The notes under the pieces are model-generated. The model did no database searches. It saw only the letters and a program-made list of their open reading frames with translations, and was not told where the DNA came from. Position numbers and translations under genes: made by a program. From positions 14,384,001 to 14,448,000 of the forward strand of contig OU015567.1 of NCBI GenBank assembly GCA_907165135.1: 64,000 nucleotides of DNA. Reading direction: 5' to 3'. Source of the stretch: Oikopleura dioica. Taxonomy: Eukaryota; Animalia; Chordata. Each line of letters opens with the position of its first letter. Position 1 is the stretch's first letter. Below are positions 6,459 through 8,442 of this stretch, piece after piece.

Positions 6459-6860
6459 AGTCAAACTACTATTATTTAATTATTCGATCACTGTAAATTT
6501 TCCTGAAAGCTTTTAAGCTAATCTAGCATCTGAATGATTTCAATATTGTGGTCATTTATTGCTGGCTGAAGGCGAAAATGGCTATTTATAACAATTTAAA
6601 GCCTTATTTCTGTCATTTTTGCGAGCAAGCACGATTTAATCGATCATTATTATTATTTATCCCGAGGCGTCCAGAATATGGCCTGATATTTGTGCAAGCT
6701 TTAAGGAAAGAGAAAAGTCTCAACGGCAATTGCAAGCTACTCTTTTTAATTCAGATTGGCAAAAACCAGCAAATTACTTCGTTTCAGATGGGCATTGTGA
6801 ATTTAGGATAATCCAGCGCTCTTATCTGACCCTTACTGTCCTCAGTGTTCCAAATATGTG

Positions 6861-7029
6861 TTTCCCTGTTTCCCTAAAATGGGAAACAATTTCCCTGTTT
6901 GAACAAACTTCTTCGAGAAAATTGGAGAAGAATGATTGTTGTTGTCGAGGAAATTTTATTTTATTATGCTGAGGGAAAAAGGGAAACAGGGAAAAAGGCC
7001 TTCAGCTGAAAAAAGGGAAACAGGGAAAA
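6861..7029. repeat. Inverted-repeat remnant (tttccctgtttccc / gggaaacagggaaa), probable MITE relic
   Basis: Motif at 6861 and a partial copy at 6890; its complement at 6981 and 7015; no clear TSD. Confidence 0.45.
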
Positions 7030-7304
7030 ATTAGTTTTAAAAGTGAGAGGCAAAGACGGATTTTTCTCAAAAGGAATTTTTGTTTGCAAGGCACGTGCAT
7101 GGACTTTGAGCGGAAATTGTGCTTGGGGTAGATGTTGGTTTGTTAGACGCAAGACAGACAAACTAAATATCCTAATATCGACAAAAATCCCGAAGGCCGG
7201 ATTCGGAGCCACTCTATTGATCAGCAGCGAATAATTTTTTAAAACAGAAGATCGATAAAGAGAGAGTAAACGAGCGAAAAGAGAAAAGAAAATTTGGGGA
7301 AAGT

Positions 7305-8442
7305 ATGGGCGCTGGATTTTCCCTCCCGCGTTTGCAGGAGATTGGACCTCAGTTGGCTGCTGGAGCTGGGATCGCAATCAGTTTTGAATTACAGTAAAAA
7401 CCGCTGGTCTGGGACACCCTTATTCCACCCACGTGTCCCAAACTAGAAGTATTTTCACTTTTGCTCTCGTGCGCCACTTTCGCTTTCCGGGTAAAGCGGT
7501 AAGTTTAAAAACAGCCCCGTGGGCGCGTGCCTTTGATCGTTAATTTGCCCGGGTGTCCCAGACCAGAAGGATTTTTAGGTGTCCCAAACCAGCGGTTTTT
7601 ACTGTATTGAGAAAATATGTCATAGGCAGAAATCGACCAGAATCCTTGAAAAAGGGGAAGGAGGACCAGGTAATTCATTTTATCAAAAAGAAGCGCTGTT
7701 GAAAACAATTTAGTTTGATAACATTATGGTGTCGTTTATTCACTCTTCAATTTCGTCACTTCTATCGCTTTACTTTTTCTGGAAAACTCCAGGTATGTTA
7801 GTGCCTTTTGATGGAATTGGAGGGACTCATATCATTTAAGAGGCCCTGAATAACCTCGGAGAGTCCGGCCGATATCAAGAATTCGCTACGCTCTTTACTT
7901 GGTCATATGTCTGGTACGACCTTTTCGACATGCTCAGATCAAATGGCTTCAACCCCTTCAACATGAAAGAAATGATGGTCCACCATTCCATAATGATTGG
8001 TGGCGGGCTCATCGTGATGCTCGACAAGATCTACGGCAACTTCACCATCTACGCGCTCAACATGGAAATCAACTCCATTTTCCTACATGGGCGAGCTCTG
8101 CTTCAAATGTGTAACCAACGTGATACAGCGGCCTTCAGAATTGCTTCAGGATTAAACATTCTGGTAAGACGCGGGCAAACATAAATTCCATCAGAATTTG
8201 TCTTTCAGACCAATGTAACTCACAGATTAGCCGTCAACTACCATATCGATCGCTGGGGTCGGGCAAATGGTTTTGTTTACGGTAAGAAACAAACATAACT
8301 TATGCAACATTCTATCACGTGATTTTTAAAAGGCTACATGATGAACTCAATTATCGCCTTTCTGAACCTGAAACTACTGTACACTTGCGTCCGACGAGAC
8401 TGGATTGACTCACCAAAAGCGATTGAGAAGAAGTCGGAATGA
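7305..8442 (+). CDS. TLC (TRAM/LAG1/CLN8) domain protein, TLCD1/2-like; exon 1 interrupted by a MITE
   Basis: N-terminal TM followed by RPES..FDNIMVSFIHS; MVHH; NMEINSIFLHGRALL; ends KKSE* (KKxx ER-retrieval motif). Confidence 0.8.
7392..7604. mobile_element. Tc1/mariner-type MITE, 213 bp, inside the TLC gene coding sequence
   Basis: TA|CAGTAAAAACCGCTGGTCTGGGACACC ... GGTGTCCCAAACCAGCGGTTTTTACTG|TA. Confidence 0.9.

Follow-up and report, generated by a model that had tools for sequence, protein, structure and literature searches.

A short DNA transposon that carries a stop codon interrupts a coding exon on chromosome 2 (chr2) of the appendicularian Oikopleura dioica, assembly OKI2018_I69. 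The question raised by this locus is whether the transcript is rescued by removal of the element as a new intron, or whether the gene has been disabled. Most introns of O. dioica, the genome of which is known for massive lineage-specific intron gain, occupy lineage-specific positions, and their origin is still argued. The window, which is the whole stretch of 64,000 nt that was analyzed (contig OU015567.1, positions 14,384,001 to 14,448,000), had been read previously without database searches, and this sequence-only reading proposed either a new, introner-like intron made from a Tc1/mariner MITE or a null allele. Positions given below are those of the window unless a contig is named. Gene features and candidate introns lie on the plus strand, and the MITE and its target-site duplications are given without strand.

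Host gene, element and family

The host gene encodes a TLC domain protein (Pfam PF03798, TRAM/LAG1/CLN8). Exon 3, which holds the core of the domain (7841-8163), is by itself above the gathering score (30.4 bits against a cut-off of 24.6) and is 84% identical to P0001. Host-gene models were searched exon by exon. The first part of exon 1 (7305-7391) comprises codons 1-29 (MGAGFS...SFEL) and aligns with residues 1-29 of 244-aa orthologues, and the second part (7607-7669) comprises codons 30-50 (LRKYVIGRNRPESLKKGKEDQ) and ends at the conserved phase-0 intron 1 (7670-7713, 44 nt, GT-AG), the position of which is the same as in the orthologue. Exon 2 with the start of the TLC domain (7714-7792, PF03798 at 15 bits) and exon 4 (8209-8281) match the annotated protein P0074, and exon 5, an open reading frame with the stop codon (8333-8442), matches its C-terminus. 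The four ordinary introns are all GT-AG and the remaining exons are intact.

The element is a 213-bp MITE (7392-7604) inside exon 1. It is flanked by TA target-site duplications at 7390-7391, the last two bases of codon 29 (TTA), and at 7605-7606, so that the TA of codon 29 was the target and the element separates this codon from codon 30. Its inverted-repeat arms (7390-7418 and 7578-7606) are 29 nt long and 97% complementary, and its coding capacity is limited to short ORFs. The frame from the ATG at 7305 reads ..SFELQ and then, through CAG TAA, stops at 7395-7397 within the left terminal inverted repeat (TIR). Removal of the element together with one TA joins SFEL to LRKYVIGRNRPES, which aligns without gaps with orthologues reading GFELLRRFVIARNRPAS. 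The TIR arms, the TA flanks, the PF03798 match and this alignment bear out what the sequence-only reading had described at the site, namely a MITE with TA duplications in a TLC-gene coding exon, an immediate stop, and a TLC N-terminus restored by its removal.

The MITE family has approximately 14 copies in the 64.3-Mb genome and falls into two subfamilies. Copies of subfamily A, to which the element belongs (ends CAGTAAAAACC...), are 92-96% identical to it, and copies of subfamily B (ends CAGTAAATACC) approximately 81-84%. The 26-nt end pattern of the family gave 42 genome matches, against 0 for the reversed control. TA was found on both flanks in 10 of the 12 copies having both ends, and the flanks are unrelated in all of them. 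The TA flanks, the TIRs and the dispersed copies with unrelated flanks therefore identify a genuine TA-targeting MITE, and the element is a non-autonomous TA-targeting DNA transposon, a Tc1/mariner- or Stowaway-like MITE. In a profile search of the genome for a transposase partner, PF13358 gave no match above the cut-off and PF01359 no match; an autonomous partner with the same ends was not found either, the related-end matches inspected being 196-bp MITEs, so the label "Tc1/mariner" is drawn solely from the TA duplication and the CAGT ends. The related 196-bp family (L044:137-332, L045:135-330, L046:100-292, L047:3817-4012, L048:3853-4048) has the ends TACAGAAAATA... and repeats the 25-nt terminal sequence once more in its interior, which gives nested ends. 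On the 5' side of the TLC gene, direct repeats (6976-6996 and 7010-7030) and an inverted copy (6859-6875) of the motif AGGGAAACAGGGAAA are present; these repeats at 6859-7030 could be a regulatory repeat or a remnant of another foldback element.

Private differences of the 7392-7604 copy from the subfamily majority amount to 9 of 211 compared columns (4.3%), a value similar to that of sibling copies. An insertion date based on this divergence was dropped as decisive, because a cut-and-paste element carries its older, pre-insertion mutations along.

Among the copies of the family examined is a second exonic one. This copy of subfamily B (chr2:8,327,999-8,328,213; L010:1501-1715) interrupts a sulfotransferase-like coding exon between flanking frames of 177 and 73 open codons. 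Relatives of the interrupted frame carry Sulfotransfer_1 and Sulfotransfer_3 domains and read continuously TVEK[VI][IF]DDCEKT across the site. Protein look-up found no annotated product for this gene, so the annotation does not always bridge such insertions. Of the 12 copies examined, these two can be shown to lie in coding exons; exonic insertions of the family thus persist, far from the scale of introners.

Orthologues and the public gene model

Orthologues were sought first with exon 3 against 1.84 billion representatives and then with the annotated protein in a word search. The appendicularian orthologues (62-78% identity, BLASTP) carry precomputed PF03798. All eight full-length orthologues are exactly 244 aa long and uninterrupted at the insertion site, where they read ..ISI[G/A/V]FE[L/I][L/F]RRF[V/I]I[A/S][R/K]NRP..; the two halves of exon 1 in the window, ..IAISFEL and LRKYVIGRNRP.., abut exactly on this sequence. 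Exon 1 is one 150-nt block with the same phase-0 intron end in P0009, P0075, P0077 and P0078, which are prokaryote-style ORF calls on genomic contigs, and in the genomic contig L052. Because orthologues and genomic contigs of other lineages are unbroken at the site, the insertion is lineage-specific and is, by these alignments, restricted to the Okinawan O. dioica lineage. Both insertion flanks and the host gene are single copy in the assembly, and a search with both flanks accordingly found no empty-site allele or paralogue there. A single individual was sequenced for OKI2018_I69 (PMC8008620), and the allele with the insertion may therefore be rare.

The host gene has a pN of 0.11-0.15 against saturated pS, which points to long-term constraint. 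Among the positions invariant in the eight orthologues, 5 of 31 are changed here in exon 1 and 5 of 107 in the rest of the gene (7714-8439; Fisher p = 0.045); the five exon-1 changes are all conservative (R to K, F to Y, S to A), and the excess is a faint hint of a possible relaxation of the N-terminus. M1, G2 and S6 are invariant in P0001, P0069, P0072, P0073 and P0081-P0084 and are present here (7305-7322, MGAGFS); this fits the classic N-terminal pattern MGxxxS of a possible N-myristoylation site. One further relative, P0085 (190 aa, 62% identity, from a JGI contig of 2212 nt), begins with MG followed by SLLHS (orthologue residue 57) and is without almost all of exon 1; the alternatives are an isoform with a short N-terminus and an artefact of assembly or gene calling.

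The MITE is already treated as intronic in the public model g8040.t1 (Oidioi.mRNA.OKI2018_I69.chr2.g8040.t1), the protein of which (CAG5113951.1 = P0074, 234 aa) matches the exons of the host gene. P0074 reads ..GAGIAI-S-RNRPES, and the genomic translations give ..GAGIAI for 7305-7379 and RNRPES.. for 7628-7669; the Ser codon must therefore be A7380 plus GC at 7626-7627, and the annotated intron is 7381-7625 (245 nt, GT-AG). Its borders, tca/GTTTTGA ... TGTCATAG/gc (a slash marks a splice border), are cryptic exonic sites beside the TIR stem, 11 nt upstream and 21 nt downstream of the MITE. The exonic MITE recognized by the sequence-only reading is thus lineage-specific and annotated as intronic, but the borders proposed in that reading, 7394-7611, differ from the annotated ones.

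Ten codons, FELLRKYVIG, are missing from the model, and six of the ten positions are invariant in orthologues (F27, E28, R31, R32, F33, I35). In a hydropathy profile the N-terminal helix peaks at 1.35 with these codons and at no more than 0.7 without them. The profile was used in place of an AlphaFold2 structure for judging the deletion; the orthologue model has a pLDDT of 42 and is usable only as a hint of a helix at residues 14-37. The loss of ten codons, six of them invariant, would make an intron at 7381-7625 imprecise and probably harmful rather than a clean gain.

The OKI2018_I69 annotation was produced with AUGUSTUS, guided by hints for introns and exons from RNA-seq (PMC8008620). The program may have crossed the stop ab initio; against this, it took the donor GTTTTG and passed over the far stronger GTAAAA close by, which suggests that a hint rather than an ab initio choice set this border. 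Searches for proteins turned up no transcript-derived protein of the host gene from the Okinawa lineage. The acceptor TAG/G of the annotated intron is formed by the codons ATA GGC (Ile-Gly, 7620-7627). As all four orthologue DNAs compared have ATC GCx (Ile-Ala) there, this acceptor is a derived feature of the Okinawan lineage.

Splice borders and competing explanations

GT-AG pairs that span the MITE, stay in frame and are free of stops number 16, so an in-frame pair is expected by chance and is no evidence in itself. The previously proposed intron 7394-7611 (218 nt, TIR donor CA/GTAAAA, acceptor TTGAG/A) is one of them: it is GT-AG and in frame, but its acceptor has G at -3, where 6 of 6 real introns seen in the host gene and the orthologue have T, C or A. 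Downstream of the donor at 7394, from which 7566, 7569, 7578, 7611 and 7629 are in-frame acceptors, the frame is open from 7553. The acceptor at 7578 (TTTTTAG/G), which lies in the element and defines an alternative candidate intron with the same donor (7394-7578, 185 nt, 10 residues added), looks stronger than that at 7611. Site strength was judged only against the six real introns and general U1/YAG rules. Splice-site weight matrices built de novo from 264 kb by ORF-geometry heuristics were rejected because of false positives, flat lengths and a drifting EM.

The element's own ends read CA/GT... and ...CCAG/CGGTTTTTACTG. Splicing from the TIR donor at 7394 to the TIR acceptor at 7592 would leave 2+12+2 = 16 nt, a frameshift at any insertion site, so rescue must depend on fortuitous flanking sites; pairs that keep the frame call for splice sites in the host or in the interior of the element. 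With this +16-nt remainder and only approximately 14 copies, the family is not built like an introner, and that part of the earlier proposal is not upheld. The RNA 7375-7630 has a predicted fold of -86.8 kcal/mol (z = -5.3 against shuffles), in which the TIR stem takes up 7394-7399, the GTAAAA donor, while G7381 and A7624 stay unpaired at the stem foot. The buried TIR donor and the unpaired border positions offer a possible mechanistic reason for the choice of the flanking sites.

On this evidence the MITE may be part of a GT-AG intron that is nascent and imprecise, with borders close to the annotated 7381-7625; this is the reading we favor, and we do so tentatively. The element has inserted at the TA of codon 29 in the Okinawan lineage and has added a stop two codons into its own sequence, and the pre-mRNA would survive through removal of the MITE as part of the new intron. 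The likeliest borders, donor 7381 and acceptor 7625, would be the cryptic exonic sites at the foot of the 29-bp TIR hairpin, which would bury the element's own GTAAAA donor and draw the two flanks together; the cost would be the loss of FELLRKYVIG from a moderately hydrophobic N-terminal helix. A specific course for the birth of the intron, which we consider unlikely as a complete account, is that the hairpin looped out the fresh MITE, that the cryptic GT and AG at the stem foot came into use with 32 nt of exon swallowed, and that the change from ATC GCx to ATA GGC may have improved the acceptor later.

The main competitor of the favored intron is a null allele, recent and possibly heterozygous or at low frequency, the transcripts of which would keep the MITE, stop at 7395-7397 and be degraded, the annotated intron then being a gene-finder artefact. 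The immediate stop, the single individual behind the assembly (PMC8008620), and the alteration of conserved N-terminal residues in every candidate spliced product are as such an allele would have them; so are the failure to find an Okinawa transcript product of the gene and the sulfotransferase-like host, which shows that the annotation can leave such an insertion unbridged. The otherwise intact host gene is uninformative if the insertion is young. The annotation pipeline, however, used RNA-seq hints and settled on a donor so weak that an ab initio choice would hardly favor it, and in Caenorhabditis elegans 90-100% of the mRNAs of genes with a DNA transposon in an exon have it excised (PMC12779559). 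If the 4.3% divergence post-dates the insertion, a neutral 735-nt ORF would also rarely stay intact, which is weak evidence. A null allele is on balance somewhat doubtful.

Spliceosomal removal from the TIR donor CA/GTAAAA at 7394 to 7578, 7611 or 7629 (GGCAG/A) would need no flanking donor. All three pairs are in frame and stop-free, GTAA agrees with the real donors of the host gene (GTAATT, GTAAGA, GTAAGA), the 7578 acceptor is a T-run followed by TAG/G, and the 7611 product changes least, with two residues, LR, replaced by one, Q. The donor is nevertheless buried in the predicted 29-bp stem and unused by the public model; the G at -3 counts against 7611, and the 7578 product would put its 10 added residues, two prolines among them, into the N-terminal helix. 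Removal by this route is distinctly unlikely.

Still less probable is hairpin-triggered, non-spliceosomal excision. In SOS splicing, AKAP17A-CAAP1-RTCB frees C. elegans and human mRNAs of DNA transposons that lie in exons and have pairing repeats, with mixed, mostly non-GU-AG junctions (PMC12779559). Here it would cut at several places within the TIRs or close to them, and of the assorted small indels left behind only a part would keep the frame. An exonic element with pairing inverted terminal repeats (ITRs) is the trigger described in PMC12779559, and the O. dioica genome encodes RtcB (PF01139, 361 bits) as well as a CAAP1 domain (PF15335), which at 41 bits lies above the cut-off. Demonstrations of the process are confined to C. 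elegans and human cells, however, the ITRs are 29 nt long here against 54 nt for Tc1, and the borders of the public model are canonical GT-AG.

Translation from the in-frame ATG at 7726 in exon 2 (MVSFIHS), which would give a protein without the N-terminal 54 residues and leave exon 1 as 5' UTR, is very improbable: the short P0085 suggests that N-terminally short forms may exist elsewhere and the excess of exon-1 changes is in the right direction, but those changes are conservative, M1, G2, S6 and most of exon 1 are conserved in orthologues and here, and an upstream ORF with a stop would hinder reinitiation.

Relation to known systems

Splicing of Tc1 from C. elegans mRNA was already the subject of earlier reports. 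The removal of Tc1, Tc3 and Tc4 from mRNA when they lie in C. elegans exons is SOS splicing (Zhao et al. 2025, PMC12779559). Those elements resemble the MITE in being TA-targeting DNA transposons with pairing terminal repeats and stop codons that lie in exons. Their removal leaves small indels at or near the repeats and rescues the product only where these are in frame and in a tolerant region. The MITE differs in being a natural 213-bp tunicate element with 29-nt repeats, and in that its one available gene model places canonical GT-AG borders in the exon on either side.

Introners of Micromonas, dinoflagellates and others reach copy numbers in the hundreds to thousands (Huff 2016; Gozashti 2022; both cited in the review PMC11282704). 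According to that review, one splice site is part of the introner and the target-site duplication provides for the second, so that removal is exact. Like them, the MITE is a short non-autonomous transposon with TIRs and a target-site duplication in coding sequence, and a candidate new intron absent from orthologues. Unlike them, it belongs to a family of approximately 14 copies whose own sites leave the 16-nt excess, and its candidate intron borrows exon sites and loses 10 codons.

Non-canonical (AG-AC, AG-AT) MITE-derived introns are described for the larvacean Fritillaria borealis (Henriet 2019, cited in PMC11282704). There, according to that review, an adapted spliceosome removes the element and the target-site duplication exactly, at non-GT-AG borders (PMC11282704). 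The two cases share the animal class, and in F. borealis lineage-specific introns with TIRs and target-site duplications are taken as MITE-derived. Exact removal of the present element would need TA..TG, AC..GT or CA..TA borders, whereas the public model uses GT-AG and loses exon.

By itself the locus is a single unverified case of an established phenomenon, already intronic in the public annotation. Its value is that of a clean test case: orthologues supply the empty site, the element family is defined, and the candidate junctions compete. It can separate the questions whether MITEs become introns here, whether element ends or the exon sites beside a hairpin are used, and whether excision is spliceosomal or of the SOS type.
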